NCBI RefSeq assembly: GCF_964194025.1
Contig: NC_134471.1
Location: 31,558,001-31,622,000, forward strand
Reading direction: 5' to 3'
DNA length: 64,000 nucleotides
DNA from: Convolutriloba macropyga
Taxonomy: Eukaryota
Within the stretch, counting starts at the first letter, position 1. The number at the start of each line of letters is the position of its first letter. The notes below the pieces were generated by a model. It made no database searches and was not told the origin of the DNA. It worked only from the letters and a program-made list of their open reading frames with translations. Of the stretch, positions 14,492-56,400 are shown piece after piece. Made by a program: the position numbers and the translations under genes.

Positions 14492-17400
14492 ATGGCAACG
14501 CGCTCTCTGACGGAAGTTTTTATCTTAATGCGAAATAATGCAATTCAACACCGACAGTTTTTTGCGAAAACAGTTGATGAGTCTTCAATATCAGATAGAA
14601 CAGCTTTAGTTGCCGACGATGAGCGGACGCTTGGCTCTCGTGCTCCTAATGGAACACCACCTGAGTGGTCTGATACAGTTGAAGATGTACAGTACAACGT
14701 TTCAAAAATACAGCAGCGTTTAAAGGTAAATTCCTTATTTTATGGATAGTATAATTATTGAAGCTCACGGATTTCGTTTATTTTTACGAATTTTGGCAAG
14801 ATCTGCTGTATTTTCAATTGGGTGAATGGGTTAGCAATAGTAAATTTTCTATTTTGAAGCTTTTAGGCCTTTGGTGGAAAACAGTGACAATACCTCCTCG
14901 CATATATTCAAGGTATGTCATTGTTTTTTTTGTTGAAATGAATGTTACCACGCGATTCTTGTCGCCATCGAGAGCAGAGCCGCAGGCGAAGCAGAGTTGT
15001 GGAATAACTTTGAGAGGGCAATAGCAACCGTGTGCTAATCGTTGCATAATTTAAGCCATACAGCAAGTGATTAGACTATCGTTTTCCGCCACCCTTGGCT
15101 GTGCCCTAAAGTCTCGACTACACTACTTGGGCGTAATCCAGAAGTCTCAACTACTACTACTAATGTAAGAAGGAAAAACGCCTTAATTTGAATAAATGTA
15201 GATTATATACAAGCGGTTAAATATTTATCCAAACGGCGCGTATCTATAATTTCAACATAAACATTAAAACGGATTACTGGGCTCTGTCAACTTTTTACTC
15301 GCCAAAAAAAACTTGAATGCTCGAATTCCGGTGAACTCAGACTACTGTCGACAAAATATCTTTTAAACGCTCTTGCAGTTTTATTGTTTTAATGCTTAAT
15401 ATTCGAAGGAATTAGGTGGATTGTTCCATTTCTTAGCTGTTGCATAGAAAAAAAATTGTTGCGATAATTTGTCAACCGATGGTTCTGGAAGATGATTTTC
15501 TGGGTTCGACAATGCATGTGGTAATTTGCGCTGGGAACTTTCAAGTTACCTTTAAATGCTAGATTCTGATTGGCGATGTAATTGTAAAAATACCAAATTG
15601 AGCGTATGTAAAGTCAAAATGAAGCAATTTCTGTAACTTATCACAATGCGAATTGATAAAATGCTATTCGTTAACCGCGGTCACAAAATAAGCATAATTT
15701 TTTTCACTACTGTTCGCGGATAATTTAAAGACTGATTTTGATCATTTACAAAATCTTCATAAGAAGCACGGTGCTAGAACAATAGATCGAAAGATCGAAA
15801 GCAAAAACTGGGACAATAGATCGAAAATTAAATTATTGAAGTTGCGTATTGGCCAATCAGATTTGAGCGCTCATTTATTATACAGCATATAACATGTTCT
15901 GTAGTGATATTTTGTTCGGTTGTATTAGTTTCATATCAAGTCCCCTGGGCCGCTAAGGCATGGCCATAATGTGGTAATCATATTGCAGTTTGCAAACAAT
16001 GCTTAATTTCAACCAATAAAAATGGATATTAATTTTCGAGCTATTGTCCCAATTTTTCTGTTTTCGATCTGTTGTCCTTTCGATCTATTGTCCGGTCACC
16101 AAGAAGCAGATCAATTTATTGCATTAAGCAATTATATTAGTCCTGTTGGTCTTTTTCATGTGATTTTTCGCTTGACCGATTTTTCGTCTGACCCATTTGA
16201 CTTTTCGTCCTCAAAAATGGGATAAACAGGTAGCGTCCAGAGGACATTAAGTTTTCTTAGTACCTTTCAGCTCATGAGTCTTCAAGGTAGAGCCACAAAG
16301 ATCTGACACCCAAGTCATCTCGACCTTTGTTCCAAGTATGTGATTCACAGAAACCGTTCTGGAGACTTATATTTATGGTGTTAAGGGCGGTTCTTAGAGG
16401 TTGACCTGCCCCCCCACAACCACCCCCCCCCCCCAACCTCACATCAGCCCCCCTCACTAAACCGCCGTTTGGAGTTGTTCTGAAAATGACGCTTTCTCTG
16501 GTGAAGTTTCTATTTTAACGAGTTGTGCGCTTTGGTTTATGTACTAGCTTAAGAAGGTATTCAAACATAATAAATTTTGTGTTGCACACGATAGAGCGAC
16601 AAAGATCTGACACCCAAGCCATCTCGACCTTTGTTCCAATCAATTTTATTTAGATTCTACTGTTGCCTCTTTCACAACTAACATACCAAAAGAAACCCCT
16701 TTTTCATTTACAGATGACTCCAACGGACGCCACACTCCAAAGGCCCGGCATTCGTAGTCCTACCACTTCTACAGAATTTACAGCAAATTTCACTTACACA
16801 AATCGCTCTACTCAGAGAAGAATTTCCTCTATATAAAATATTGAAAGAATGGCAAATAGAACGTGAAATTAGTTACCTAAGAAAAGTGTATTGTTTTTAA
16901 TTGCTCTCAAGCAAAGTTTGTAGCAATTATATTAATCCTGCGTATTTTTGCGTGATTGATTTTTGTCTAACGCATTCAACTTTCCATCTTGAAAAACGGG
17001 ATGAACAGGTTAAACGCTGAGGGCATTAAGTTGCTGAGCAGCTCTTTTAGAATTCGGTTAGTCTCTAAGTGGACACTTCGCCGAAGCTGCTAAGAAGACA
17101 GTCATGCTGCAAAGTTGGTTTGGACCCCAATCCAACCCATCCCCCGCTCCAACCCCCCTAAATTGCCCTTTTCTGCTAGCCTCCCTAAGCCCAAGCTGAC
17201 CACTACCAAAGACAGCCGGTCGTCAAAGCTATTCGCTCGACGACGTTAATCGGTTGTTTTCTTAACGAGTTCTCGTTTTCATTGCTCTTTAATAGCCGCC
17301 CTCATCTTCTCAGCCGGCTATTATAGCGCTCCTATTTTGTTTTTTTTTACAATTCAAAGAATTTGAATTGTATTGGGGCGCTGTCTTTTTTACGACTCGA

Positions 17401-20400
17401 AGAGGAGTATTGGAGAAGTCCTTTTTTTAAATCAATTTTATTGGAGTGGTTTTTGAAGCGGGAAATGAAACGCGTGAAAAATTTTGGAGTGATTTTGGTG
17501 CTGAACAAAAGTGAAGAGTGGAGCGGAAAGAGAGTGGTTTTTGTTCATACCGCTGTCTTTGAGAGAGCGAGAAATTGATGTGTGAAAAAATTTTCTCTAA
17601 GCGAGCGAAATTTTTTTGTTCACGTGCGGCATTTTAAAGCAGTTTTTTTCCATTTATTTTGGTTAAGAGGTTTGGTTATGATTTTGTTTTAATTTCAGGC
17701 TGGTTTTGGTAGTGCTTTGAAGGTTTTTGGAAATTCGTGTGAATTTTATGATTATTCGGAGGTTTTTTTATGTATTTGGCTGATTTTCGGGCTAATTTTC
17801 GTTTTTTTGACGATTATTTTGTTTTACTGGCTCAAATGGGTATTGAAGAAACCCTTCTACTTGAGCAAATTTATGATAACAATTGGTTCTAGTTTTATGG
17901 GTAAGAATCTTTTTTTTGTTGAAAAATATGACAAAAAAAAATGGCGAAAATTGGAACTATTTTTCGTAATTTCTTGCCGTTTTTCGTTTTTTCTGTTTTT
18001 AGATAATTTTCTTAGCCTATTATGACGTGCCTATTGTTTTGTGAGCATCTGGATACCCTATTGGCTGATGGTAATTTTTCTTTGGATTTATATGCTTTTG
18101 AAATTTTAAAGAATTTGATAACTTTTTCCAGTTTTTCAGTGAAAGTTGTTTTTAAGAGCTTTCTTTTCATAATTTAGCCTAAAGTATTTTTTTTTCAAAA
18201 TTCACCTCAGTGGAATAAGTAAGTACTAGTTGTTTTCGTGAAGTTATTTTGGCAGAGATAGTTTTTTCGGGATCTCAATTTATAACAAAATTTGATCAGA
18301 TTTTTTATCATATTTTAACAGATTTGATTTTGTTTTTACTTTTTTGTTTCATGACTTTGTTTCAAGATAATCATAAATTAGTGAAGGCACGTTTTGTTTG
18401 ATGAGTAGTTGGATGGCGTTTAAATAAATTTTCACTTCGAGTCATTTCCGGAATTCTTCCGGCTATGTTTTTTAAGATCTGTTCACACATTTTCATGATT
18501 TTTGAAGTCAAATTGGAGTAGTGATTTTGGTCACGCCGAAACAGGAAGTGGAGCGAACAAGCGAGTGGTTTTGCGGGGTGAAAATTTTTTGCTCTAAATT
18601 TAAAGTAGAGTGAGAAAACGGGGTTTGAACAAAAATTCGCTTTCTCGCTAGTGGTTTTTTGTTCACATGCGGCAATTTCACTTTGATTTTTACTGTTTTT
18701 TCGATTTTTTGGATCGGATTTTTTTTCTAAATGGTTTTCCCAATCCATTCATAGACCGTTCTTTGTCTAGTTTTGTGTTTGGTCAGTGAAAATTCATTGA
18801 ATTGTATGCCAGGACTTGTCGTGCTATGTTTTTTTACTTCGTCGAACTTTTTTTCGCTTTACCCATTTTGCCTCTTTTTCGACATTTTGCGTGAAATCTT
18901 TTTGACTTCTCTAGGCTAGTTTCACTCTTCTGTCACTCTACTCAAAGTCCTTTTAAACAGCAGCTGCTTAGCAAAGCAATTCAAAATGAAAAGAGTCAGT
19001 ATTAAAAAATCAAAGTCAGAAATAGAAACAGGATAAACCCATAAAGCCCATTTTTAGATGCCCGGTACTTGAACTTTGTTCTCATAAGTTTTAGTTACTA
19101 TCTATAAAGCTTATTTGTATTAATACTAGACCCTGTCGCCTCTCTCTGAGAGACAGGAGTATGTTCAATTACGAAATGACATTAAAATATATTGCACTTA
19201 AAAATGTTTATATACAAAAATCAATTTTTGTTGATATTTTCTTTTCTTTCAATCCCAATAGAGTTATGGGAATCAACGGCGGCTATTTTCCGGCAATCTG
19301 CTGGGTATGTTTAAAAATCTGAAGAATGTGATGGCAGAGCTATTTGACGCTTTACAACATTGCTTAATATGTTCGACAAAAACTTTATGGGTTAATCGTT
19401 TTTCTTCTGACTGTTGTAAAATATTGTTTTCGCACTTGACTTGTGTATGTTAGTTTCTGAAGCTGAGGATGATTCCATATAACTGTCTGGCAAACCATTA
19501 TTTGATTTGTGAAATGTACTTTATTTTCAAATTAATTCTTTCGTTGCTTTAGTTGTTTTATGGGTTCCATTGCACGTTGGCTCACATGCATATATCTTCC
19601 ATTAGGCACGGATTTTGATGCAGCCTACTCCCCATTTTTTGTTTAATTTTTCAAACTTTTAAATCTTTAATCTTTGCAAAGGACATTTTTGGGGCACATT
19701 TTCTACATGCCTTGAGTTTGGTTGTTTTGGGAACCATTTTTATACATGGTTTGTAATTTTTAATGGACTTTTTGTTAATTTAGTTTCTCTAGAAATGCCT
19801 TTCTGATTACATTTCAATAGCTGCTTCATTTCAGAACGTTTTTGATATTTTGTAGATCCATTTATAGAGGAAAGTGATCTTTGTGTGCTTCAAAGGCGCG
19901 TTATAAATCAATTTAGGCAGAACTGCCCTGAAAACTTTTCTTGAGACAAACGGAACTAGGAACAGTGCCACAATCACATGAGCCCTCTTTTTAAAATTAT
20001 TGATTGTTGACAGGAATTGCAGTCCATGCATGACAAACACATCAACAGGCCAAGTTTAGATGACGATTTTTCCTCGGATCATGGGATCGAGGCCTTGACC
20101 CAAGAAATAACCCAAATGTTTCTACATTGTCAAAAGTGCATTCAAACCATCAATAGATGTGCTACCGATGTCAAGTTCAACTTTCAAGATCGCAAGCTGG
20201 CCAAAAACGTGGTGTCATCATTAGCTTCAAGTTTGCAAACACTCTCTACACAATTCAAACAAGCACAATCTGATTATTTGAAGAAGTTAAAGTCAAGAGA
20301 GGAGAGATCAAGGTTCTTCGCCTTTGAGCCGTTGGATAGTAATGCCGATGATAGATACTCTTCATATGACCAAGGTTTTTCTGATGCTCAAATGCAAGCT

Positions 20401-20700
20401 TTGATGGATAACACAGACATGGTTGAAGAAAGAGAACGCGAGATCTCTAACATAGTGCAATCTATTACAGAACTGAACAGTATTTTCAGGGATTTGGCTC
20501 AAATGATAGTTGACCAAGGAACGGTGCTTGACAGAATTGATTATAACGTTGAGCATGCTTCATTTCGTACTGAACAGGGATTGAAACAACTCCAGAAAGC
20601 GGAGACTTATCAAAAGAAAAATAGGAAAATGATGTGCATTATTGTTTTGGGTATTATAGCTTCAGTTATGTTTGTACTTCTAATGGCAACTAAATTTTAA
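14492..20700 (+). CDS. STX16: Syntaxin-16 (Qa-SNARE), 2 coding exons: 14492-14725 and 20014-20700; 306 aa
   Basis: N-peptide MATRSLTEVFILMRNNA, PPEW, phase-0 junction K|ELQSMHDKHINRP, SNARE motif EREREISNIVQSITELNSIFRDLAQMIVDQGTVLDRIDYNVE, C-terminal TM. GT at 14726, AG ending 20013, AATAAA at 20940. Confidence 0.96.
15770..16100. mobile_element. 331-bp MITE with ~60-bp TIRs made of ACAATAGATCGAAA subrepeats, 8-9-bp TSD (Mutator-like)
   Basis: GGTGCTAGAACAATAGATCGAAAG...GGGACAATAGATCGAAAATTAA mirrors TTAATTTTCGAGCTATTGTCCC...TTTCGATCTATTGTCCGGTCACC; flanks AAGAAGCA(C) 15761-15769 and AAGAAGCA(G) 16101-16109. Confidence 0.85.
16898..17256 (+). mobile_element. Family C Helentron/DINE-1-like non-autonomous element (other copies ~16125-16530, 21051-21390, 45960-46200, 55585-56015, 56024-56283)
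   Basis: 5' TAATTGCTCTCAA..TAGCAATTA hairpin, shared body (GGGATAAACAGGTAGCG-like, C-rich tract), 3' hairpin CGACGTTAATCGGTTG. Confidence 0.65.
17290..19309 (+). mobile_element. Nested Helentron-like stack A[D[B]]: A 17290-19309, D 17348-18828, B 17392-18467
   Basis: 5' ends in order TAATAGCCGC / ACAATTCAAAGAATT / CGACTCGAAG. 3' ends in reverse order CTTCGAGTC+CCGGAATTCTTCCGG+CTATG, AATTCATTGAATTGT+CAGGACTTGTCGTG+CTATG, GCGGCTATT+CCGGCAATCTGCTGG+GTATG. Confidence 0.85.
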
Positions 20701-21399
20701 ATATTTTGAATTCCTATTTGTGGACATATCTATTTAAGGATGTATAAATTAAAGCTTAATTTGCATTTGTCGTTGTATATAATTGGCTTTGATAATTGAC
20801 TCTATGTTCAAATAAGGTTTAATCTGAACAGAAAGAAGTTTTTGGTACAGAAGTTGCTAAGCTTCGTATAGTACAAATATGTTTTAAGAACGTGAGTGAT
20901 GTTGTAATGCTTATAGGACGTTGTGAGAACACGTGGATGAATAAAGGAAAATTTATGACCTATTGCTTCGAAAATTTGTCGCTGAATAAATTCCGTTCTT
21001 TTTGCTCTGAGTGATCTGGCAAATATTTAGGTGAATAACTGTATGGTTATAAATTGGTTTCAAAAAAAGTTTTTAGCAATTGTATTGGTCCTCATTTTCT
21101 TTTTCGTACTACTGATTTGTCTGATAGTTTTTTTTTCGTCTGGACTTTTGATCTGGCATTAAGCCGCTGAGCAAATCTCTTAGAGCCTTACTAGTCTAAG
21201 TATGCGATTTGCCTAAATTCATGGTTTGAAGGGTTGTTTTTCAGAGTTTGACACCCTCCTTCACCCTCCCGCTCTACCCTCCTTCAATTAAGTTTAATCA
21301 AGACTCCCTAAGCCGCAGCCTGATATTGACGAAGCGAATCGCTCGCAAGTCGTTTGAGATTAATAAGCTCGACATTAGTCGATTAATTACTATCGAATG

Positions 21400-23572
21400 A
21401 GAAGCAATTATTGTAAACGTGTGCCTTTGCGACGACTCGAAGAGGAGTATTGGTATTCTGACGGTTTTTTACGACCCGAAAAAGAGTAATGGTATTCTAC
21501 AGGTTTTTTAGCCGGAGCAAGTTTGTTCATGACTTGAATTTTGACTTCTTTCGTTTCAAGCATTTACCTGTTTTTGATTTTTGACTTCTGATTTTGAACC
21601 TTGGGCTTCAAGAGTAGCTCAATTGGTAATGTATAGTAATTAGGAACTGCCGATCATATTCAAGGTAACAGGCCATTTTCAGGTTTTTTGATCCTATATA
21701 TGTCACCCCGACGTATCTAAACTACAGACCCCACACCTCCTCATATACCTACCTCCCCCACATAACTACCTCTCCCCCACCTACGTACCTGCCCCCCCCC
21801 CTGCTCCACTATCCCATCTACCCCCAACCCCAACTACCTACACCACACCTACCCCCTCCACCGAATATAATGCACGACGCTTCGAGTTGTTTTTGGTCTT
21901 CTACCGGCTTTGAATTTTTAGCTGACGCAAGTTTGCTCATGACTTGTACGTCTGACTTGTTTTCGAACATTGACTTCTGCTTTAGAACTTTGACTACTGT
22001 TATCGAATAATGAACTTTAACTGTACCTTAGTTACTAATGCAGTGATTAGATACTGCTGGTTATGTTCAGGGTCGACAGGTCATTTTGAGAAATTTTCTT
22101 CCCATAAGTTTTCTGTCCCATTTACTGAACCCGACCCCTAACTACACCCCGGAACAAACTTACCCCTCCCATCTACCTATCCTCCTCCCCCACAAACTTA
22201 CTCCGGCCCCCACCTACTTTTGCACCAACTACCTACCCCCTGTTCCACCCGCACCTACCCTCCCCGTATTTACCTGCCCCCTCCTAACAAAGCTACCATC
22301 ATCTTATCTACCTCCATAATTCCCCATCACCACCAACCCACAGCCTCAAACGAAAAATTGTGCGCTTTTTTCAAAACACTATCGGTTTATTACGCATTTT
22401 TTTGTTTCCGATTTCGGTAGTAAAACTGCTTTCTTTTTGATATTTCTTATTTAGAGAATATTCGAGTATTCTACCGGTTATGTTTTTTTAGCTGGCGCAA
22501 GTTCGTTCATGACTTGAACTTTTGATTTTTTTTGTGTTTTCGAACGTTGAATTCTGTATTAGAACGATTACTTTTGTTTTCGAACGTTTGACTCCAACAA
22601 AAGATCAGCTACTAATACACAAAATGGGAACTGCTTGTAGTAGTCTCTTCTCCCTATTCAAACTACTGTAACCACCCACCTACCCAGACCCCTAAACTAA
22701 AAGCTGTCTTCATTTTTTATAACCATGTCTAGTTTCATTAGGCTATTAATTTCTTCGTTATTTCTTTCTTTCGTTTTTTCTTACTTTAGATAAGGTTAGT
22801 TGATTAATTATATTGCACGACTCTTCGAGTCGCTTCCGGTATTCTACCTTCTATGTTTTTTAGCTGACGCAAGTTTGTTCATGACTTGAGCCTTTGGCTT
22901 TTGTTTTAGAACATTGACTTTTGTTTTCGAACATTGGACTTCAAGAGTAGCTGGCTACTAATACATAGAGATTAGGAACAGCTGGCAATACTCAGGTAAA
23001 AGGTCTTCATGAGAAGTTTTCATCTCTTAACATTTTCTCCCTATTCAAATTACAGACACCGCGAACTTTATATTTTTTGAAACCATGGCTATAGTTCATA
23101 CAGGCTATTAATTTTCTCGTTAATTCCTTTCTTTGATAATTCATATTTTGTATGGTTGTGCAAGTTATTTTCGGTCTTCGAGTTGTTTCTGGTATTCTGC
23201 CGGCTATGTTTTTATGTAGTTTTTTGGCTTGACCGTTTTTGCCCTTTTATTCTAGAGTTATCTTTGACTTCTCAAGTGACCTTTTCACGCACTTTTTCTT
23301 ATTTTTGAGTGTCTCAACTGCTCATCTTCCGAAATAAAGTTTGTTTTTCAAACAAAACGGGTTGTGTGAGGGAAGATTTCAAGGCCCCGTTAGACGAGTG
23401 GGTAACACCTCAGTTGGGTTGATGGAATCGGACTCTGGGGGTCGGAGTTCAAACCCTACCTTCGGGTGATATTTTTGCAGCCCTAGAGAAAAATTAATCT
23501 AGGCCACAGCCCCTGAATTATATTGCACCGCCTGTCATTGGAGAGCTGTTTTTGAGATGTTGATCAGTTTAT
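21400..23572 (+). mobile_element. Family C element containing an array of four family B bodies (21431-23208) and a tRNA-like segment
   Basis: C 5' arm GCAATTATTGTAAACGTG, two B 5' ends (21431, 21470), four B 3' ends (~21880, 22460, 22823, 23177); the C body then resumes, homologous to 29880-30217. Confidence 0.7.
23383..23468 (+). pseudogene. tRNA-derived segment (A/B box) inside a family C element
   Basis: A box TAGACGAGTGG 23391-23401, B box AGTTCAAACC 23446-23455; no intact cloverleaf. Confidence 0.55.
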
Positions 23573-24399: not shown

Positions 24400-25095
24400 T
24401 GTAATGGTAATCTGGGATTTGTCAAATCGATGAAATGAAACAGGATTTAAGTCAATGCTGAACGTGAAAACAATTGTATAGGTCAACTCGCTGAAGGAAA
24501 ATCAAAAGCTAAGAGTCGCTTTTGGTCATTCATTGTTCTGATAGTATGCTAAAATAGATTTGCAAAATTATTGGCGTTGGGAGTGAAATTTTGTGATCAG
24601 GCACGTCTTTTTAGAAGTAGGTTTTAAATTTTTAGTTTTGACTTGCGATCAAAGTGGTTCTTCTCAATTATATTACTCAGTGGGTCTACTTTTGAAGCTT
24701 TTTGATCACCTAAAGGTTTTGTTAGCTATTTTGAGCAATAGGAGTTGTTGGCTATTTTGTAATGGTAATCTGGGATTTGTCAAATCGATGAAATGAAACA
24801 GGATTTAAGTCAATGCTGAACGTGAAAACAATTGTATAGGTCAACTCGCTGAAGGAAAATCAAAAGCTAAGAGTCGCTTTTGGTCATTCATTGTTCTGAT
24901 AGTATGCTAAAATAGATTTGCAAAATTATTGGCGTTGGGAGTGAAATTTTGTGATCAGGCACGTCTTTTTAGAAGTAGGTTTTAAATTTTTAGTTTTGAC
25001 TTGCGATCAAAGTGGTTCTTCTCAATTATATTACTCAGTGGGTCTACTTTTGAAGCTTTTTGATCACCTAAAGGAGTTGTTAGCTATTTTGAGCA
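24400..25095. repeat. Near-perfect tandem duplication, period 358 bp
   Basis: GTAATGGTAATCTGGGATTT at 24401 and 24759; ORFs 24593 and 24951 are nearly identical. Confidence 0.95.
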
Positions 25096-25156
25096 GTTTT
25101 TATCATGTTGACTTTGCCCCGTTTTATGCAATTTTTGTATCCCTTGACAAGTCTCT

Positions 25157-25637
25157 AATAGCCGCACAGCGATAGTTGGTGCTATTATTGGCCTTCTCTT
25201 GGCTTGTTTTTATTTCGTCAAGATTTTTGTTACAACCATATGACGTCACAAGCACTTCAAATATGCTTTTTGTTCACTCTTTCAAGCAATTTCCACTGAA
25301 GTGTGTGCGTGACGTCATTTTTCACTCTTAGTCGATTTTTTTATTCATTCGCGTGATTAAATTTTTGGTCACACGTGACTTACCTCACTCTCAGAAATGA
25401 TCTCCTCACTTTGAAATTGATTTATTTATTTTGTTTCAAGGAGATAAGGTCAACTGAGTGTATATCACTCTAATTGAAAGTTAGTTAAGAGCAGCTAATA
25501 GAGGCAGAAATAACTATTACAGATTCTTAATCAAAATATAACATCTCAGCGTTCAATGAAAAGATTTCTGTTTTATTTTGAGACTGTTGAATTACGAAGC
25601 TATTGCGGCTGTTTTGTGGCGATATGCCAGCTATGTT
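25157..25637 (+). mobile_element. Family A Helentron-like element, apparently un-nested
   Basis: 5' AATAGCCGC..GTGCTATTA; body GTGCGTGACGTCATTT shared with 30445 and 39285; degenerate 3' GCGGCTGTTTTGTGGCGATATGCCAGCTATG. Confidence 0.65.
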
Positions 25638-43400: not shown

Positions 43401-46400
43401 TTTGCTAGAAAGCTCTTTTCCAAAATTTTTACTGATTACTATTGTACTGTAATCTTCATTTTCTACTGTAATTTTCATTCGGCCTTCGAATTGTTTTTAA
43501 TCGATTTTTTGCCTTTGAGTATTTTTCTTTTGCTTGTCTTTTCTATGATTATTTTAATTTTTGAATTCGTATGAAATCATGTTGTCAAGCATATATACAA
43601 CTAGGAAGATGTATAAGTTGTTTTTGTCTTAATTGCAGTCATTAGAAATCTAATTGTAGTGGTTTTCTGATTCTTAAATTTGAGCATTCTGTTCTGAAAA
43701 ATTTAACTTCGTTATTATTATTGTCTTCCGTTTGCTTTCGCGATCTTTTCGAGATTAGAATCACGAATTATTTGAGGGCGATTGATAGTCTTGTCAGCTT
43801 TTTCAGCCTATCAGTACTTTGACCATCTTAATTTTTTCGAACTTTTTTAATGTTTACCAAACGTTTTCAATAAAAAGTTTTGCTGCATTTTGTTTCTCTT
43901 TGTGGCAGTGGTTCAAATTTCACCAATTTGTAGATCAGACCTGGCGAGGTAATGAGTTAAGGGTTTAATACAAAAGGTAATGACCTCAGCTGCAATTACA
44001 ATTTTTTTGTGAAACTTTGACGCTTCGAGTTGCTCCCGGAATTCTTCCGGCTATGTTTTTAAGATCTGTTCACACAGTTTCATAATTTGTGAAGTCACAT
44101 TGGAGTAGTGATTATAGTCACGCCGAAACAGGAAGAAGAGCAATGAGCGAGTGGTTTTGTGGCGTGAAATTTTTTTGCTCTAATTTTAAAGTAGAGTGAG
44201 AAATCGGTGTTTGAACAACAATTCGCTTTCTCCCGTGGTTTTTTCATATGTAAAATTTTTACTTTGATTTTTACTGTTTTTGTTTCGATTTTTTTGAATC
44301 TTTTTTTTCTAAGTGGTTTTCCCAATCCATTCATAGTTTATTCTAGGCCTATTTTTTTGTTTGAATGGTTTTTTGTTACCTGTGGCATTTTGGTATTGAT
44401 TTTCAGTTTTTTTAAATTTTTTAACTGATTTTCTTAGAAATGGTTTTCCGAATTCACTCATAGTCCGTTCTAGTTGTAGTTTTTGTTAATTCATCGAAAA
44501 TTCTTTGAATTGTGCATCAGGATGTGTCCTGCTATGTTTTTTACAATTCAAAGAATTTGATTTGTATTGGTGCGCTGTCTTTTTTTAAGATCTGTTCACA
44601 CATTTTCATGATTTTTGAAGTCAAATTGGAGTAGTGTTTTTGGTCGCGCCGAAACAGGAAGTGGAACGAAAAGGCGAGTGGTTTTGTGGCCTGGAAGTTT
44701 TTCGCTCTAATTTTAAAGAAGAGTGAGAACTCGGTGTTGGAATAAAAGTTCGCATTCTCGGTTTTGGTTTTTTGTTCTAATGCGGCAATTTCACTTTGAT
44801 TTTTACTGTTTTTTCGATTTTTTGGATCGGATTTTTTTTCTAAATGGTTTTTACAATCCATTCATAGACCGTTCTTGGTCTAGTTTTCTGTTTAGTCAGT
44901 GAAAATTCATTGAATTGTACGTCAGGACTTGTCGTGCTATGTTTTTTTACTTCGTCGAACTTTTTTTCGCTTTACCCATTTTGCCGCTTTTTCGACATTT
45001 TGCGTGAAATATTTTTGACTTCTCTAGGCTAGTTTCACTCTTCTGTCACTCTACTCAAAGTCCTTTTAAACAGCAGCTACTCCTTTTCGATTTTTTGGAT
45101 CGGATTGTTTAAATGGTTTTCCCAATCCATTCATAGTTTACTATAGACATGGTTTTTTGTTTGAATCAAATTTCAATTTCTCGCTAATGGTTTTTTGTTC
45201 ACATGTGGCCTTTTTACATTGATTTTGTTTTTTTTATATTTTTGCTGCGGTTTTTTAGAAATTGTTTTATCATTTCACTCATAGTTCGTTCTGGGTTTAG
45301 TTTTTTGTTTAGTGTGTGACAATTCTTTGAATTGTACGTCAGGACTGGTCCTGCTATGCTTTTTTAATTCGCTTTACCTTTTGATCACGTTTTTGGTTTT
45401 ACATAAGTCACTACTTTCACGTTTGACTTGTGACTGATATCATTCACTGTTTCAACTGAATGGTTTTAAAAACCATTCATTTGATGAAATACACAAGATA
45501 GTGAATACAGTCAAAGTCAAAATATTAAATCAAAGAGATGGGATAAACCGATAAAGCCCGGTCATTAAATCATTGAGAATTAGGTTATCAAAGTTCATTT
45601 AGAGTGTTTGCTAGCTGACATTGGTATTAAGCTTTGGTATTTTTTGGTATTTGTCTTTCAGTGTAGAAGCTGAATTAAGTATGGTTTTAGAGTCCCACCG
45701 AAACTGCACGCCGAGTTAGAACATTTTTTGACACTGAAAAAAAATAGAAAATTTTGTCAATTTATCTCTTCTTTTTTTTCTTTTTCTGTTCCAATCCCGA
45801 TGTGCATCAATCGCGTCAACGGCGGCTATTTTCCGGCAATCTGCTGGCTATGTTTTAGTTGTCACTGCAGAAATCTAGTTTAATTTACGAATTTAGTTTG
45901 GACAATTTACGTCTTGATCAAAAGTTGCCTATATTAGAAACCTTCAGATAATAGATTATTAATTGCTCTCAAAGAAAATTTTTAGCAATTATTTCAGTCG
46001 TGCGGTCTCTTTTATGCCATGTTCCTACTGGTCGAATTTTCGTCCGGCGCTTTTAACTTCTCGTCCTTAGTTTCCAGTGGTGTATAATTCTATTGGTGTA
46101 TAATATCCCCTAAACCAACTCACCGGATGATGCAGGCTTCAACAATAGAATCGACACTTCGGCAGTCCTTAGAGGGCAATTCTTTCGATATTAGACGCAC
46201 TCGTCTGTATTGTTCCGACCCCTCTTGGGGGGGACTATATACTCTTATGGGTTTTTTTGTTCAGACAATTTTCGCCGATCGATATATTCATCGTAGAGAG
46301 TTGAAACTGGTATCATTAGAAAGCTCGTCGAGCTTAGAATATGGAATTAAAAAGATTTTTTTTATTTTCCTTTTTAAAGGTAGTTATCGAGGTTAAAACT

Positions 46401-49400
46401 TCTGAGAAAAGTAGAGTGAATTCCGTTGTTTCTATTCACATTTTCCGGAATTTTTGCCTAAATTTTCGTTAATTTTGCTAAAATTTGTTAAAATTTTTAA
46501 GAATAGTGTTCTTAATGTAGTTTTAAAGAAAAAGTATTGTTGATTATTTTGATAATTTTTGTTGTCAAAAATTCTGGCTAAATATTTCAAAATTCAGCCT
46601 CTTTAGCCTAATTGTTGTGATAATCTTATTAAATAGATTAAATTGAGCTAGGGACTTGAACAAAACATATCCGCCGGTGCCAGCATTGGTTCCACAGGAT
46701 TATATTCCTGACACTTCGTTCCTAGCTTGACGGGCACTTGTTGTTGCTGTATCCTTTCTTCGTCGTCGGTGCCAGTATTGGTTCCATAGGCTACTTATTA
46801 AATAAAATCTTAATGCCTCCGCCAACACGTAACAATATCGGTTCCACCAGCGATGATCTAGTTGAAAAATTGATAGCATGCACGGCTACGAATTGTCCTG
46901 TACATAAAAAAGTTTTGGTAACCGCTAATTTTGACTGCTCTCAACCTTTCACTTGCGGCTTTTGTTGTGCTTCAAAATCAGTTGAAACCTTCAAAACCGT
47001 GCTCTGAAAAGGTTACGAATTGAAAAATGAGCAGAAGACTCGAGACACATTGTTTGCTGAAATTCAGCAAGAGCAATCACGTAAAGATGCAAAAAGATTA
47101 AATTTAACCGTAAAAGGGACAAAGCCATCTGACAATTGCGCTGGCTACGATATTGTTGAAAAGATTGCAAATCAAATTGACGTATCTCTTGTGTCACCTG
47201 ATATTCAGTTTAAATGGATTAGAAAACGACAACGTGATACAGGAAATCAGTTATTGCTTCGCAAGTTTATAGAAATGATAAAAACGAAATCAGTTTCTGC
47301 GTAAGTCAGTAGCATTGAGGGATTGTGAGAATTTCGATTGGGTATGTGTGTCACCAGACTTAACTAAGGCTGAAAGAGTACAACAGTACAATTTGCGATT
47401 GCAGAAATGTCAACTTGATAGTCAAAATCCTGCAATTATATACAAAATTTGTTGTGGTCGTGTACAACAACAACAGAATTGACTACAGGCAAATTACTCC
47501 TCTCAAATTTCGATCCTCCTTCTTAACGTTCAGAGCATTCTATCGATTGAAAGAGGGTTAATGCTTTGCCAGCTGTTAAGCTTAGTTCCGCCCGCTGTTG
47601 TCTGTCTAACAGAAACATGGCTTGATGGTTCGGTCAGTGATAATGGAGTTTTGTAGGTTACCCTTATGCAGTCGTTCTGCGATCAGATCGAACGGCCGGG
47701 CGTCATGTTGGACTCCTAGTAGCAATGAGTAACGCTTTCTTGAGTACTATTGTTTTAATTTATTAAAAGTGTGAGAATTTTTGTGTTCTTGTCTTAAGTA
47801 ACCAGATTCTTACTCTCTGCATTATACTTGCATATCTACTTCCTCGAGGATCGGTGTTTTATGTCAAACCTGGTGTTACAGAATTCAACTTGCGAAGTGT
47901 TTCTGCTGATGTGGAGGCAGGCCTAAGCTGCGATCAACGCAAATCTGGCCAGTGGATTCTACTTGGCGATTTTTTTTTCCCAAAATAGGTTGGGAGTCGA
48001 TCTCTTCGCCTCATTCTGATGAGCAAAAATTGTTCGAATTTTTATGCAATGATTTATTGCTTATCCAAATTGTTGATTTGCCTACTCATAAGCTTAGAAG
48101 TATTTTGGATCTAATTTTTTGCTCCCATCCCGACAAATGGGACTTCAATATTGTAGAGCGATTGTGCTCAGATCATTATCCTATTCTTTTAACAAATGTT
48201 GACCTAGATTACCAATATGCAAATGGGCACGATTATACGATCAGCTCTTTTAACGAGGTTGACTACTCTACGCATCCAACACTCTCACGATCTTTTGCCC
48301 AGAAATGCCACAACTTTAATCCTGATTTTCTATCAACGTTCTATCGTAAATTATTTTGCGCTCTCAACCAAAGTGTTCACAGAAAACTGAGAAAGCGCTT
48401 TGAAGCTCCCTTCTATTATTCACCGCAGACAATGCACTGTTTAAATAAACTAAATACAGCTCAAAAATATCAGAAAAATTCAGTTGAATGCCTCGAAAAG
48501 GAGCCTATGATTCTCATTGACATGGGCAAGCAGGTCTTGTTGAGCAGTGTACAGAAGTTTAATACAAATGAAGCGTTTGCTTTGTTGAAAAGTATAATTG
48601 GTAGAAGTTTCTTCCCTAAACAAATGTTCTACAAAAAGGAGATGTCTTTTGAAGGCTCAGTGAAAGCAAATCTGTTCAACACATTTTTTAAATCAATTTT
48701 TCAACCGAAAACTGAAATACGGTTAACTGACTGAAAACTGAAATACGGTGTGCGGCAATGAGAGCAAGTTATCTGATATTCAGTTCAGCCTTGACGAAAT
48801 TCAAAATTATCTAAGTGTCCAAAGTAGCTCAACTCCTGCTTTTGATGGTATACCGCCGACCATTTTAAGTAGAGCGGGGCACATACATTAGCACCATTTG
48901 TCCATTTTGTTTTCACATATATTATTCATTCGCAAATTTGGCCCGAGAATTGGAAATGTGCCTATGTTCCCCCTATTCACAAAAAGGAGCTCGAGCGGAC
49001 GTTGAAAATTATCGGCCTATTTCACTACTCCCGAAGTTGTCTTTAGTTTTAGAGAAAATTCTATTTCCGTTTATTTATCCGAAGATTAAAGATCGGCTGA
49101 ATCCTAGACAACATGGATTTCATGCAAAATATTCTACAGTTACGCAATTGCTCATATTTCTTATGAGTTCTATCTGAATTTGGACGGAAACGTTGAGGAA
49201 GTTGTTGTTTTTTTAGATTTCAGCAAAGCTTTTGATTCTCTGGACCACTCCACGCTGCTTTCAAAAATTGTTCGTTTTGGTTTTGACGAAGATTTTGTGA
49301 AACTTAATAATTCCTATTTATCGTCTAGACGGCAATGTGTTAAATTAGATGGGTTTTATATCAGAGAGACCCCTAGTTACTAGTGGTGTTCCCCGGGGAA

Positions 49401-50378: not shown

Positions 50379-50424
<46 letters not shown>

Positions 50425-53400
50425 TTTCATCAAAAACAGTACGAAATAAGCTTCTTTAGTCCACTTTGATTAAATTTGCTGGCTGTACAACCCCATACAA
50501 CACTAATATAATCATTGTAGACTCAAAAGGAGGCAAATTGTACTTCAACTTCTGTTGAGAGTGCTCTGTAAATAAAACTTTGCCGTTTTTTGATAACGTT
50601 ACTCGTTGATTATCATAGACACAGTATTTTTGACTTATTAACTATCAAATTGTCTATGTCAATAACACGAAGATTTTAGTGTTCCTAATGGACAAACAGC
50701 ATTAAAAGGGCTAGTTTTGGACCAATCTTGGATTATTGCAGTCCAAAAAGAATTCGGATTGTAACCAGTCGGTCTTCTTTTTTAAAAAAAAATTGATCTT
50801 TTTTATATTAAATGAAGAACAGAACATATCAAATCAAAGTGCAGGAGTGATAGGTCCAATTGGCCTTCTAAGCAGCTCCAAGCTATTGCGTTTAATTTTT
50901 TACTTGAGAGCTTATGGTCGTTTTGACTTTTAAAAATCATTGATTTTTAAATAAATAATGGCGTAATGAACTTTTCCTCTATTTTCTTCTTAATTTGGTC
51001 AACTTGTGGCTTAGTGTCAGCAAAGAAAGAATGCTTCTTCTTTCTACTGATTTAAATTTTAATCTCTCTTGGGGTTTCAAGCCTAAAGTTATTGTTTTTT
51101 GGCTTTGATACTACCAGATTTCAGATTTCTTTTATTTTTGGATATTTGCCCAGTTTTCAGGTTTTCTAGTTTTTTCACATTATCACAATATTGACAGTTC
51201 TCATATGACATTATTGGCGTTCAAAATTAGGCGCTATTGAACATATTAAAGTCCTGAAAGATATAGATTACCGTTTTAACGGCTTCGACAATTTCTTGAA
51301 AAATTTAATTGAATTTTTAGTTTTGTCTTCAACTGTCGTTTTTGCTTTGTCGTTTTAGTCGTATAAAATTTCCTGTATACGGACAGGTTTCATTAGTTTC
51401 TCAAGGAAGAAAAGATGAGCCAATTTTCTGATACTAATAGGTAGCTGATAGCTTTCATGCCTTTGAAAACAATTGTTTTCCAAAATAAAAAAACTTTTCA
51501 AATTTGCAATTCTGTTTTTCTATTGTCTTTTTTTACCTGGTCTCGTTAATTACAGGTCCAATATTACATTGTTGGTGTCAAGGTAAGGCGTCAAAAGAGA
51601 TTGCGGTCACAGAGTCTAAAATTTTTAAGGAATTCGTTATGACCTCACTGGCTTCGACAACCGTTTTTCACAAAAAAGTAAATTAACTTGACTTTTGTCA
51701 TATTTGAAGTTCTTTTTGTAGACGCAAGACTTATTCTGGATAATGGCAGGTCTCAAGGGCTTCCTTTTAACGAATAAGTTAACCTATTTAACTAATTAAT
51801 TTTGTAATTGATGGCTTTCAGGACTTTGGAAGTAATTTCGTTTCGAAAAAAAAATCAAAATTATTACCTAATTTTGCTTTTTTCTTTTTTGCATACTTTT
51901 TAGCTAGTCGCATTAAAGAAAGGCCACATACTATAGTATCGGTGTTTGAAGAAGGCACAATTGAACATATTTTTGAGGGCCAGAATGTGGCTCAACGGCC
52001 GCGACAGCGTTTTCTGGCAAGTTCTAATTGAATTTTTGTTTTGTCTTTTTGGCCACATAAAAAGTTGAATAATGTTAGGTCTTTATTCTCTTCTATGGAA
52101 GCATTGGTTATTGTTATTCTTTGGGATATTTTACTTTATTTCTAATGGTGACTTGATTTCTAAAAGCGATTTATTTAACTTCACTGTTTTTGTTCTTTGT
52201 CATATTGTTGCCAAACCTTTTTATGGACTGGTCCCATATCTTTTCCGATGATTTTTAAATTATTTTGTTTAGTTTCAGTTTTATCTGACGGTTTGTTGAC
52301 TTTGTTATTAAGTTCTGTTTTTTGAAACGGATATCTCGTCATATCTGTTTTTTGTAATATCTCGTCAATCTAGTGCATCATTTTTTACTCCACTGGGTTA
52401 TTTGCTTTGGAGGCTATCTTTTCGCTGATACACTATTGTTTTTAAAAAAATCGTTTTTTTTGGCGTTTTTGGGATTCCCAAAAATAATTTTTGGGTTTTT
52501 CTATCTGTTCCACATTTGGTAGACAATTATGCGAAAATTGTGGATGAGCGGGGTCGGAACCTTATGTGCGGTCGCACATTACCGAGCCTCCTTGTTTGGA
52601 AGACTACTGGCAAAATGACAACTGGTGTGGAAACTTTTGAAAATGGTTATAAATGAAAAAAATAAATGCAGAAAAAATGTTCATTGTGGCACTAGTTGGT
52701 TTTTGTTGACTTTGCTGCCTACAAAAACTGTAGAGGAAGTAAGTGTTCCATTCTTCTCTGCATTGCCGTGAAAAATTTTAAGTTTAAATTCGAAGCTCTG
52801 TTTTCGTAAAGTCCCTTAAAATATTTTACATTGAATCCTGAATTTCTCTTACGTGACGCAATTTTGATTTAAATCTGTTCGCTTAACCGCAGTTCCTATG
52901 TAAGTATATTGTGCCATCACCATCAATTGATTAGTGCATTTTGAGTTAAGTGTCCCAAAATGTTGCTTGAATTATATTAGAGAGAATTAGATGAAGAATG
53001 AAATAATTGTTTTATAAAAGTGTTTCTTTGACACTTGCGAATTTATTTTGTATTAGTACCCTCGCAATCAGTGTTTTTGGAATATAAGTTTGGAAAATCT
53101 TTGACACTATTACCAATTACTGTTCGATTATCGCGTGTTCTTACGAACGAAATAATTATTTTTTATTCATGAAACTTGAATGAGTGGAGATCCATAGACA
53201 TGTTTTTGCCTTATTGAATATTTTTAATAGCCGCCCTCATCTTCTCAGCCGGCTATTATTGCGCTCGTATTTTTTTTTACGACTCGAAGAGGAGTATTGG
53301 TTTTCTCTCGGTTTTTTTTTTACAGGATGTAGATTTGTTCACGCGGCATTTTGACCTAAAAGCGAAAGTGAGAAAAGCTGTCTTGGTGAACAGATTTTCA

Positions 53401-56400
53401 CTAAGCGAGAGAAGTGTTTTGATCATGCGCTGCGTTTAGTGAATGACTTTTTGACTTTGAAAAGTAGTTTTTGACTGAAATGCAAATATAGATAACCGTT
53501 TTTAGCCGTTTTTTCGTCTAAGTGGCCCAAATTTTTTGCTTTTAAATTGGTTCCTTGTAGAAATAAATTCTATTCGATACTATATTGAAATTTCAACCTC
53601 GGAAATTGATACCAGTGTTTTGCAGAGCCTGAAAATGCGTTTCAAGTTGAAAATTGGCACATAATTCTTGGTTTTTTTTTGTTAATTTTTGGCTTTTTTC
53701 TTTTAATTTCTTCTTTTTTGGATCTTTTAACCGTTTTTTTATGTCAAAAATCAGTTAATATAGCAATTTCTCTCACTGAAAATTCCTATACTCAACGCCT
53801 CTTTCTACCTCGATGTAATTTTGTTCAATGAAATTGTACTTATGCTAATCCGATTTTGGTAGTTTTTTCCGATTTTCATCAGTTTTTTGTTTGTATTTTG
53901 GTTGTAATTGCTAGAAATAGATTTTTTGTGCAACATGAGGGACTTTAATTTCGTTTCAATAAAAATTCAATGATTTTTTGGCGTTAAGTTTTGAGAAAAC
54001 AATTAAATCTTTTTCATAAATGCAGTCTTAACTTAAAAGTTCTTTGACCATTTTTTTTGCAAATGTTTCAATGTTTCTTATTTATGAATTCTGCTTTTTC
54101 CTATTTTTTGGTGTCTCAGGAGGATAGATTTTTGTATCGGATGAGTAGTTATCTTTTCTCTGTCTTGAATGCTGAACAATGAAATGTATTCGTTTTTCTT
54201 GAATTTTTTAAATTGATTTTAAACTTTCAAAAATCAAGAAACTCCTTTTGTTACGGTGTTCCTTACATTGTGCCAATATTCTTCACATTCTAGTTATTGT
54301 CATTCTAGCTTTGTCTTGGCACCTAATTTTATTTTCGGTATATTGATTTTTTTTAGTTGTAAAAAATGAACGATTTCAGCTTTTTCTTAGATTTTTGTCA
54401 TTTCTTTGGTGTACAATTGATTTCATTCAACAAATGGCAGTACTGAGAAATTGATAGCAAGCCTCTTCCAAAATTTCTACTTATGACTATCTATTGCAGC
54501 TTTCTTCCGGCCTTGGTGTTAATTTAAACGATTTTTTGCCTTTGAATATTCTTCTGCTGCTTATGTCTTTTCTATGATCAATTTTATTTCTGATTTAGTA
54601 GGAAATCATGTTGTCTAGCTTATGTACAAAGAGGAACAGTTTGTGTGTGTTGTTTTTTGTCTTAATCGCAGTGATTAGAAGTGTAATCATAGGTGTTTTC
54701 TGATTCTTAAATTTGAGCTTTCTTTTTTAAAAAGATTTAACTTAGTTTCTAAGATTATTATCTGCCGTTTGCTTTCGCGATCTTTTTCAGATTAGAATCA
54801 TGAATTATTTGAGGGCTATTGATAACCTTGCAAGCTTTTTCAGACTATCAGGTTTTTTTGACCACCTTAATTATTTTGGATTTCTAACGTTACCAAACGT
54901 TTTCAATAATATAAAATTTTGCTGCATTTTGTTTCTCTTGTTGACAGTGGTTTAAGTTTCACCAATTTTTTTAGCAGACCTGGAGAGGTAGTGAGTTAAT
55001 GGTTTAATACAAAATGTAGTGGCTTCCGCTGCAATTACGGTTTTGTTAGCAAAGTTTTAACGCTTCGAGTCGCTTCCGGAATTCTTCCGGCTATGTTTTT
55101 CACTTCGTCAAACTTTTTTTCGCTTTACCATTTTGCCGCTTTTTCGACATTTTGCGTGAAATCTTTTTGACTTCTGTAGGCTAGTTTCTCTCTTCTCTCA
55201 TTCTGCTAAAAGTGAATTTGAACATCAGTTGCTAAGCAAAGCAATTCAAAATGAACAGAGTCGGTATAAAAAATTGAAGTCAGAAATAGAAACGGGATAA
55301 ACCCATAAAGCCCAATTTTAGATGCCCGCTATTTGAATGTCGTTCCTATAAGTCTTAGTTTCCACCTCTAATGCTTATTGGTGTTGATAGTAGCCCCTGT
55401 AGCCTCTCTCTAAGAAACAGAAGTACGTTATGTTCAACTACGAAATGCCATCAAAATAGATCGGACTTTAAAAATATTTTTGTACAAAAATTTTTGTTTT
55501 TCAATATATTCTATTTGTTCAATCCCAATCATGCTTATTGGAATCAACGGCGGCTATTTTCCGGCAATCTGCCGGGTATGTTTTTAATTGCTCTCAAATT
55601 TGTAGCAATTATATTAGTCAAGTTTGTCTTGTGCGATTTTTCGCTGAACCGATTTGTCGTCTGACCCATTTGACTTTTTGTCCTCAAAAACGGGATAAAC
55701 AGGTAGCGCCCATTGGGCATTAAGTTCTCTATATTTCATTCTCATTAAGTTCTTTCAGCTCGCTATTCTCTAAGTATGCGAAACTGTATTGGAGACTTAT
55801 ACTTACGGTGTGAAGGGCGGTTATTCGAAGTTGACCCCTCATCACCCCCCGCCCTTACTTCACCCCCAATCCCCAGCCTTGCACATTGTCCAGGCCGTAA
55901 GAGCCCCGTGTAGCCAAGGACATCCCTCGCAACGTTGCCCCTTCAAGTAGGCTAAAGCTAGGCTCACTAAACCGTGGCTAGCTACTGACAAAGCCAACCC
56001 CTCGCCGGTCGTTGTTTATTTTTTATTGCTCTCAAACTAATTGCTTTTTAGATTAGTGCTGTTGGTCACTAAACCACGTAGCTCGCACGCATGCTCGATC
56101 CTCTTGAGATCCCTACTGCGCTCACCCCATTCCATTACCCCCTCCCCCCAATATACCCCTTTTCCCCCTATCAGTTAAGCTTAGGCAAACCGCGCTTAAC
56201 CCGGCTAGCTAATGACAAATCCAACTTGGTAGTCTCGCGGTGTTAGTCATTTGAGAGCAATTCGTCCAAAGTTAGTTGGTTATTCGAATTGGGCTAGAAG
56301 CTTCCAAAATTAGAAATTTGATTTGCATTTTATCCGCTCTTATAAACTTTTAAGTTAAGCTCCTAGTTGATAACCTTTTTATTTGTCTAGTTGAGCACCT

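Follow-up and report, generated by a model that had tools for sequence, protein, structure and literature searches.

Nested Helentron-type elements in the genome of Convolutriloba macropyga and the choice of their insertion sites

Why do short transposable elements in this part of the Convolutriloba macropyga genome lie within one another like Russian dolls, and what determines the point at which one enters another? In the window (the whole stretch of 64 kb that was analysed), rolling-circle non-autonomous elements cover about 45% of the part from 16 to 61 kb. The answer that we favour, and that we hold to be probable with some reserve, is that elements of two families, B and D, insert into a landing pad just inside the 5' end of resident copies, that A and C elements insert into ordinary T-rich DNA, and that the resulting composites are amplified. 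The sample consists of this single 64-kb window and of partial contig tables from the genome, and the insertion events are partly dependent on each other, composites having been copied.

Structure and classification of the elements

HINE and DINE-1 elements are defined by subterminal inverted repeats (about 11-15 bp), a 5' inverted repeat, a 3' palindrome, T-rich targets and the absence of a target site duplication (PMC4067079, PMC2374699, PMC7492417). The elements in the region are confirmed to be of the non-autonomous Helentron/Helitron2 kind, HINE/DINE-1-like, short and non-coding. A preliminary description had named subterminal inverted repeats, hairpins at the 5' and 3' ends, T-run targets and the lack of a target site duplication. 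All of these are present, and TATG and Ts come after the 3' hairpin. In A1, A2, A3, D, B, C and C2, the 5' start pairs over 9-16 nt with a stretch just ahead of the 3' hairpin; the A1 start at 17291, for example, pairs with the A1 3' subterminal repeat. The 3' palindromes have stems of 5-6 bp, 1-3 nt ahead of TATG, and such stems precede the TATG at 18464, 30214, 39176, 44052, 44533, 55092, 55577 and 59289.

The layout of the 5' module is kept in 25 copies. In all families, it consists of a hairpin in which the 5' subterminal repeat pairs with an inverted copy close by (folding z from -1.5 or -1.7 to -4.2, with -4.1 for the D copy at 17349), followed by an unpaired spacer of 12-20 nt, often with ATTGG at its start, and then, at 30-53 nt from the end, by the first T-run. 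Spacer and T-run are predicted to be unpaired beside a stable hairpin in every family. Comparisons with empty sites, which are paralogous copies and not alleles at the same locus, indicate insertion into T-rich or TT targets without target site duplication, Ts being the only flanks of the inserts. Filled pads carry about twice as many Ts as empty pads, and a duplication of Ts alone is therefore possible, an ambiguity likewise described for HINEs (PMC4067079).

The likeness to published HINE/DINE-1 elements (Thomas et al. 2014, PMC4067079; Yang and Barbash 2008, PMC2374699; oyster Cg_HINE, PMC7492417) extends to the subterminal inverted repeats, the inverted copy beside the 5' repeat, the 3' palindrome, T-rich or TT targets with variable flanking Ts, the lack of a target site duplication and of ORFs, and a very high copy number. 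Published elements have a microsatellite after the 5' inverted repeat, whereas here a T-run stands in that position and receives insertions of other families. The 173-bp repeats of C2 and the internal repeats of D may correspond to the central tandem repeats that some HINE copies have.

A canonical Helitron (HLE1; 5'-TC...CTRR-3', A/T insertion) was rejected: the elements here start with A(A/C), end in TATG and lie in T-runs. A MITE or other cut-and-paste transposon with terminal inverted repeats was rejected as well, the 3' repeat being subterminal (21-23 nt from the end) and only Ts being possibly duplicated. An autonomous partner would share the ends and encode Rep/helicase, in Helentrons proper together with an APE endonuclease. 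No such ORF was found among the ORFs of at least 110 amino acids in the 64-kb window, which match only a SNARE, a dehydrogenase and a LINE endonuclease. A tRNA-like interior of C, noticed by eye (about 30032-30115 and 23385-23470), was recovered neither by ARAGORN nor by Rfam at the gathering score or E<=1, and the D 5' module had no match in a metagenome scan. Where four families had first been proposed, the number of families and subfamilies comes to at least five or six (A1-A4, B/B'/B2, C/C2/C3 and D).

Nested copies and their junctions

All the nests of the preliminary description are present where it had placed them. In a motif scan, the terminal motifs of each family occur on the plus strand only and pair in a last-in-first-out order, and the earlier end coordinates agree with the TATG ends within 1-2 nt. 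The earlier list had overlooked a compound nest at 42063-45852, a degenerate A element with B at 35355-36551 and several solo copies. The copies are:

16899-17256, + strand: C2-type solo copy with an empty 5' module, T-run 16945-16949 (5' motif; fold z -2.1)
17291-19309, + strand: A1 hosting D, which hosts B; A1 5' module 17291-17348, body and 3' end 18829-19309 (5' and 3' motifs)
17349-18828, + strand: D in the A1 pad, hosting B; 5' module 17349-17391, body 18468-18828 (motifs)
17392-18467, + strand: B in the D pad, 43 nt inside D (contig joints from 17391 to 18468)
21381-23572, + strand: C-type host with degenerate ends and a B-type nest in a T-run about 50 nt inside (sequence reading)
21432-23208, + strand: B/B' compound with stacked 5' modules at 21432 and 21471 (motif scan and sequence)
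25157-25635, + strand: A3 solo copy with an empty pad, T-run 25207-25211, then conserved ATTTCGTC
29352-30839, + strand: A2 hosting D (29401 to about 30345), which hosts C (29825-30217) (motifs and alignment to 38582-39700)
35355-36551, + strand: degenerate A-like host; B-like 5' end at 35403 right after the pad, A-type 3' end 36523-36551
37600-38160, + strand: fragment of a composite of A with D; 3' part of D, then A-type body
38594-39685, + strand: composite of A2 with D (38643-39179), a paralogue, lacking C, of the nest at 29352
42063-45852, + strand: compound, rearranged nest (motif scan, sequence, BLAST); A4 5' module 42063-42118, D 5' part 42119-42292, A3-type pad fragment 42293-42317, B 42318-44055, remainder of D to 44536, second full D 44543-44941 in tandem, A body piece 44949-45078, D 3' part to 45358, A body and 3' end to 45852
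53226-55580, + strand: A1 hosting B (53279-55095) in the pad equivalent to that with D at 17349
55584-56013, + strand: C2-type copy in tandem, starting right after the T-run of the A1 3' end, with a shortened 3' end
57288-59292, + strand: A1' hosting B2; A1' 5' module 57288-57336, B2 5' end at 57337 in the A1' pad
57576-59292, + strand: C2 within B2, 239 nt inside, with central 173-bp repeats
59870-60279, + strand: C3-type solo copy (motif scan)

Contigs from many other genomic D copies, in which the pad is empty, join 17385-17391 straight to 18468, which fixes the ends of B as AC...TATG, without shared letters. The A1 body of the same nest is 84% identical to 55090-55583, and the A1 5' module at 53226 is 95% identical to 17288-17344; as had been claimed, the same A1 site is occupied by D at 17349 and by B at 53279. 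For the nest that begins at 57288, the 3' ends of B2 and A were not found within the window. The C2-type copy at 55584-56013 has BLAST matches to 57570-57808 and 59197-59259.

The C-type host does not start at 21400, as first reported, but near 21381, where it adjoins a preceding C-type 3' end (about 21340-21385); its segment 23208-23311 matches 29872-29975 of the empty C copy. The B/B' compound that it holds has four B-type 3' ends (21880-21912, about 22452-22482, 22823-22855 and 23176-23208), each followed by an identical body start, and its two 5' modules are read by TRF as a 39-bp repeat with 85% matches.

The C copy within the A2 nest sits deep in D, at offset 424; this exceptional position had been correctly noted, but the start is at 29825, with a hairpin of its own, and not at 29826. 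In an alignment of 29340-30850 with 38582-39700, this C is one clean insert of 393 bp plus a T tail, in a T-run. The two A2 copies with D are 85-91% identical in both host and guest parts and have unrelated flanks; the composite has been copied as one unit, its host ends still working, in agreement with the earlier claim that such ends stay intact.

The nest at 42063-45852 is rearranged, and simple insertions alone are insufficient as its cause. Its segment 44581-45078 is 93% identical to 18468-18965, spanning the D/A junction. Within the degenerate A-like host, the segment 35414-35561 matches 42329-42483 at about 76% identity, and the segment 36357-36553 matches 45655-45855 at about 83%; the fragment at 37600-38160 has BLAST matches to 18495-18699 and 45298-45632. 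A generic scan of both strands for a hairpin, spacer and T-run gave 122 hits on the plus strand and 32 on the minus strand, with about 48 in shuffled sequences; it is too unspecific for new families and detected no further stacks.

Choice of the insertion site

The proposal of a fixed insertion site holds for nine of the 11 separable nesting events, which lie in the first T-run, 30-58 nt inside the host; because of the Ts, the point of insertion can be located only to within a few bases. Under uniform use of the runs of at least five Ts within hosts, nine of 11 events at the first such run have a P of about 2e-6. There are 5-14 of these runs per host in A, C and D and 22-32 in B, and the run of the pad is not the longest. 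Both off-pad events concern C-type guests. B and D guest copies lie in pads in 12 of 12 cases, A-type units in none of eight. Over 45 kb, 493 runs of at least five Ts are counted and about 27 pads, which make up about 5% of these runs. Contrary to what had been supposed, the families do not target each other symmetrically: the pad preference belongs to the guest families B (with B' and B2) and D. A- and C-type units use ordinary T-rich DNA, the C-type units being found in ordinary T-runs, at true 3' ends or at deep sites. These junction types recur in contigs from elsewhere in the genome, namely junctions of the A pad with a B 5' end, the B pad with a B 5' end and the D pad with a D 5' end.

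B (with B' and B2) and D would thus enter the first T-run of resident copies of any family, in the orientation of the host, probably at the T|A step of the run, and bring along their own TATG and T5-7 tail. Russian-doll stacks would build up because elements of these two families enter other copies almost exclusively at a single T-run close behind the 5' end, and because each guest carries its own pad, allowing repeated insertions. The two ends of an element appear to be defined by the matching subterminal repeats, so that copying could still take in an entire invaded host together with the ends nested in it, and composites like A2 with D could multiply; that invaded hosts remain mobile implies, in turn, that these repeats pair the two ends.

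As to how the pad is recognized, it seems most likely that the transposase of B and D, or guest DNA bound to transposase, docks on the resident 5' module, with strand transfer into the adjoining T-run in its single-stranded state. Within the 5' module, the 3' subterminal repeat has a direct copy about 21 nt ahead of the insertion point, which equals the spacing at a true 3' end; the inverted copy lies 17-26 nt from the insertion point, and the 3' subterminal repeat 21-23 nt from TATG. That only one B or D copy (44543) lies behind a true 3' end argues against the pad being a mere mimic of a 3' end, a comparison that is confounded because the T-tails of the outer 3' ends are short (2-5 T). The idea that the pad spacer copies the 3' hairpin of its family was kept as a sub-hypothesis only, the similarity between the two being weak (permutation p = 0.04). 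More tentatively, and with doubts prevailing, B and D can be regarded as obligate nesters, the target of which would be the module of hairpin, spacer and T-run with which every Helentron-type element begins.

HUH enzymes, as in IS200/IS605 and Helraiser, work on single-stranded DNA, and the spacer and T-run are predicted to be unpaired next to a stable hairpin in all families. Extrusion of the 5' hairpin or a replication stall might therefore leave the T-run single-stranded and favour HUH-type integration there, DNA structure and not protein docking being decisive. This is unlikely, though worth considering: A- and C-type units, presumably with the same chemistry, do not use pads, and true 3' hairpins with T-tails are rarely used.

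The reading in which B and D insert repeatedly into resident pads must also be weighed against one in which every stack goes back to one or two ancient composites, so that nesting would have taken place once or twice and amplification would account for the rest. Such amplification agrees with the pair of A2 copies with D in unrelated flanks, with the identity across the D/A junction of 44581-45078 and with contig loose ends, as the sequence upstream of D 5' ends tends, genome-wide, to end like an A3-type pad. Part of the abundance of stacks does stem from composites amplified as units, the two A2 copies being an example. As a full account it is, however, improbable. At least seven host-guest pairs are found (D in A1, A2 and A4; B in D, C, B, A1 and the A-like host; B2 in A1'), one A1 site holds D in one copy and B in another, and the D copy at 17349, in A1, is 90-98% identical to the D copies within A2 hosts while the hosts are 54-61% alike. 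Several of the insertions are independent, in agreement with the earlier claim.

We give even less credence to stacked ends having arisen by local tandem duplication, unequal crossing-over or gene conversion instead of insertion. The tandem B 5' modules at 21432 and 21471, the four B-type 3' ends against two 5' ends at 21432-23208 and the doubled D segments of the nest at 42063-45852 could be so produced, but the last-in-first-out pairing of unrelated families, the clean empty-site paralogues and the different guests at one site are left unexplained. Duplication or conversion covers a minority of structures only and is ruled out as a general cause by the empty sites. Hardly credible at all is nesting near 5' ends by chance, without a special pad: T-runs are targeted by all HINEs (PMC4067079), T makes up 36-44% of the elements, which take up about 45% of the region, and C-type guests do occupy ordinary T-runs within D and B2, but the use of the first, not the longest, of 5-32 runs in nine of 11 events and the confinement of all 12 B and D copies to about 5% of the runs contradict it.

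Relation to other nested elements and significance

In the literature searched, neither a fixed nesting site nor guest-specific targeting was found for Helentrons or DINE-1, but only nesting in general and the stacking of 5' ends. Among published cases, the stacked 5' ends of Fusarium Helitron2-like elements and the nested Helitrons of maize come closest. FoHeli1 of Fusarium carries two to five stacked 5' termini, ascribed to self-insertion near the resident 5' end; it belongs to the same broad clade of end structure and likewise has short (<200 bp) repeated 5' ends (PMC5148889; PMC13342296). Its stacks, in contrast, are of one family, usually have a single 3' end and have been attributed to re-mobilisation that starts at the leftmost 5' end, and a defined target run, cross-family hosting and complete last-in-first-out 3' ends are absent from the descriptions (PMC5148889; PMC13342296). 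Canonical maize Helitrons, according to PMC3288121 (citing Yang and Bennetzen 2009, Du et al. 2009), integrate within other Helitrons or in their vicinity and have multiple termini as well as pseudo termini; the preference for other copies, the nested intermediates and the internal pseudo 3' ends are shared features, whereas the ends are 5'-TC...CTRR-3', the target is AT and no fixed host position is described. Another Helitron-like element resembles the elements described here in its sequence- and strand-specific integration with absolute orientation bias, but its target is a host repeat and not a module borne by other transposons.

Biochemistry on target choice and end recognition of Helentron/Helitron2 elements is still called for by Thomas et al. 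2014 (PMC4067079), and a fixed nesting site offers a testable handle on the target choice of these poorly understood transposons. The genome holds a natural experiment: a target of about 45 nt, well defined and present in thousands of copies, is entered by some families and left alone by others, and the sequences lend themselves to direct tests of cleavage and integration. For repeat annotation, there is a risk that composites are called as families and that stacked 5' ends mislead Helitron finders. If B and D were indeed obligate nesters, transposons would encode a landing site for relatives, and target choice would be read from DNA structure, comparable to IS200/IS605 elements and integron attC sites; the unexplained module of inverted repeat plus microsatellite of DINE-1/HINEs in other animals could serve likewise.

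Nesting in pads would also explain how a genome fills with stacked elements at little cost to genes, and in evolutionary terms it may be read as a safe-haven strategy. An inflation of introns had been proposed as well, and one nest, that of A2 with D and C at 29352-30839, is located inside an intron of a malate/lactate dehydrogenase gene.

Families and their ends

Element ends were identified by self-BLAST, direct reading and mismatch-tolerant motif scans of both strands. Four end types occur in the window, those of the A, B, C and D families (with subfamilies such as A1 and A2) of short, non-autonomous Helentron-like elements.

Family A: 5' start AATAGCCGC, the first hairpin arm; 3' end GGCTATTTTCCGGCAATCTG..TATG
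Family B: 5' start ACGACTCGAAG; 3' end CTTCGAGTCG, a CCGGAATTCTTCCGG stem and CTATG
Family C: 5' start CAATTGGTCTTGAAC; 3' end CAAGAGCAATT, a stem and TTTATG
Family D: 5' start ACAATTCAAAG, also a hairpin arm; 3' end TTGAATTGT, a short stem and CTATG

In each family, the 5' start and the sequence immediately ahead of the 3' stem are reverse complements. All recognised ends (about 27 5' ends and 28 3' ends) are carried by the + strand, and recognised elements occupy about 45% of the region from 16 to 61 kb. The elements agree feature by feature with the structural definition of HINE/DINE-1 (PMC4067079, PMC2374699, PMC7492417), but have a T-run in the slot where published HINEs have a microsatellite. 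Canonical Helitrons and MITEs were rejected as candidates, since canonical ends and MITE features, respectively, are absent from these elements.

By motif scans and direct reading, the last-in-first-out order of ends claimed in the preliminary description holds at every site listed there, and the end coordinates given there coincide with TATG ends. Two nests can be added: a degenerate A element with a B guest (35355-36551) and a compound nest (42063-45852). A further C2-type 5' module (TAATTGCTTTCGAAC...) begins at the far end of the window (63954-64000). Inside B' units and C2-type bodies, C-rich low-complexity tracts of the CCCA/CCTAC type are found repeatedly (16400-16450, 17130-17160, 21700-21870, 22100-22350 and 55830-55880). 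The A2 and A3 bodies have in common TGACGTCA palindromes, which are CRE-like, and a conserved CGTGACTTACCTCACTC stretch (25241-25325, 30446-30460, 39287-39300); they might have a regulatory role or have been captured.

Insertion at the landing site

In 25 copies, from all families, the first 30-53 nt form a front module made up of a hairpin, a spacer of 12-20 nt that often starts with ATTGG, and the first run of at least five Ts, which serves as landing site and is here called the pad. As single-stranded DNA, the hairpins fold better than shuffled sequences (z -1.7 to -4.2), while the spacer and T-run are predicted to be unpaired. The module also contains the 3' subterminal repeat as a direct copy, and the insertion point follows this copy by 17-26 nt (about 21 on average); at true 3' ends, TATG ends 21-23 nt downstream of the repeat.

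Several comparisons support true insertion. The D-containing A2 nests at 38594-39685 and 29352-30839 align end to end apart from one block in a T-run, 29825-30217 plus T tail, equipped with a hairpin, a subterminal repeat and a 3' stem of its own. Furthermore, the solo A-type element at 25157-25635 is continuous across the site that is occupied in seven other A-type copies, and shares with them the A[CT]TTCGTC after the T-run. Contigs from four public runs, aligned to 17200-23190, derive mostly from other genomic copies. Depth is about 72 in unique DNA versus a summed depth of 0.2 to 3.5 million over elements, so copy number must be very high, although summed depth is not a count. Among the joints listed, the best supported pass directly from 17385-17391 to 18468 and represent D copies without B, so that B is bounded at 17392-18467, with an AC start and a TG end. 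The others listed lead from an A or B pad to a B 5' end, or from a D pad to a D 5' end; junctions of these types are thus also found elsewhere, in assemblies made independently. At 42293-42317, a 25-nt A3-type pad fragment separates a D interrupted at about 175 nt from a B 5' end. This D resumes beyond B at its own post-pad position, an arrangement suggestive of recombination between two distinct nests or of a flank that was carried over.

Rebuilt hosts contain 5-14 (A, C, D) or 22-32 (B) runs of at least five Ts, and 63-414 TT sites, and the pad is not the longest T-run of its host. Offsets proportional to T-run availability had been named beforehand as counting against a preferred site. When the comparison was run, offsets did not track availability: the first such run is the site of 9 of the 11 separable nesting events (Poisson-binomial P about 2e-6; 3e-5 for the six fully rebuilt hosts by themselves). 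The nesting-site preference is a real and statistically solid feature.

Guest families and a possible mechanism

It had also been proposed that all families insert into each other's T-run. This stands for B and D, but not for A or C. All 12 B-type and D 5' ends directly follow another element's pad, 11 times a 5' pad and once a true D 3' end that is itself within an A pad; they are hosted by A1, A2, A4, an A-like copy, an A3-type pad fragment, D, C and B. Each of the eight A-type 5' ends is preceded by ordinary DNA with only 1-5 Ts. C-type elements occupy ordinary T-runs, sites directly behind true 3' ends (55584, about 21381) and positions deep within D and B2, and both exceptions to the pad rule, the one already described and a second, are C-type guests. 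The region has 493 runs of at least five Ts and about 27 pads; for ten independent B/D events all to fall in pads the chance is about 1e-13, and the difference in pad use between A and B/D gives a Fisher p of about 2e-5, both rough values as the events are few and partly linked. Pad preference is thus a property of the guest families B and D.

That some insertions are independent, and not copies of one composite, is borne out. In the two A2 copies carrying D, host and guest parts are both 85-91% alike and the flanks unrelated, so this composite was copied as one unit. When the A1 nest is compared with the A2 nests, similarity is 93-98% in the D 5' module and 90% in the D body, but only 59-61% in the A modules and 54-56% in the A bodies. 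The same A1 site is occupied by D in one copy (17349) and by B in another (53279), and the window contains no fewer than seven different pairings of host and guest. Composite copying and multiple separate insertion events are both present.

The data show where and in which orientation the inserts lie, how the families differ as guests, and that hosts are copied whole even after invasion. Element ends probably pair via matching subterminal repeats, by which inner 3' ends would be skipped. T-run polarity would set the orientation of the guest, which would supply its own T tail. In B and D, 5-7 Ts follow TATG, and the pad retains 6-9 Ts left of the guest, compared with 5-9 in empty pads, which makes the T|A step the probable point of entry. 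The direct repeat copy at about 21 nt, matching the spacing at true 3' ends, suggests that the transposase, or guest DNA held by it, docks on the front module much as on an end. It could be imagined that the pad works purely as a 3'-end mimic, but B and D rarely use true 3' ends (though T tails there are short), the spacer resembles the family's own 3' stem only weakly (p = 0.04), and a transposase gene is absent from the window. Docking on the front module remains the preferred reading, and the nests may serve as a safe haven.

Helitron-in-Helitron nesting, multiple termini and pseudo 3' ends are known from maize (PMC3288121). In Fusarium, Helitron2-like elements have short 5' ends stacked two to five deep, attributed to self-insertion (PMC5148889, PMC13342296). 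The searchable literature yielded no description of a fixed landing run common to several families, of complete last-in-first-out stacks built from different families, or of guest families confined to such sites. Pad nesting yields a concrete, testable hypothesis on target choice of these transposons.

Genomic setting and strand bias

G+C content of this eukaryotic window is about 36%, the + strand is T-rich from 12 kb on, and exons of two genes are present.

20017-20700, + strand: SNARE-domain exon
27608-29113 and 33694-34059, + strand: malate/lactate dehydrogenase exons

In the dehydrogenase gene, a 4.6-kb intron separates Ldh_1_C Pfam positions 1-57 from 58-173. A single 831-nt contig of run X5 corresponds exactly to 20012-20815, at about 35 times its neighbours' depth, and resembles an expressed exon of the syntaxin-like SNARE gene.

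Within 16000-61000, all of the roughly 27 recognised 5' ends are on the + strand, that of both genes, and about 13 are outermost and hence independent insertions. Outside elements, T-runs make up only 57-70% versus 30-43% for A-runs, so that target availability alone would give this uniform orientation with P about 0.001-0.01. Possible causes are selection against antisense copies where DNA is transcribed, or a bias linked to the replication strand.

Large tandem duplications lie upstream of the nests (1-12279): a unit of about 2.94 kb at 98.5% identity (1-4910 versus 2941-7852) and one of about 1.2 kb at 87-92% (8838-12279). Immediately upstream of the solo A3 element, 24400-25095 consists of 1.9 copies of a 358-bp unit with 99% identity. 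Finally, a 260-aa ORF (47952-48734) has a weak match, under the curated cut-off, to Pfam Exo_endo_phos_2 (E 0.0024), the endonuclease of endonuclease-reverse-transcriptase (LINE) elements.
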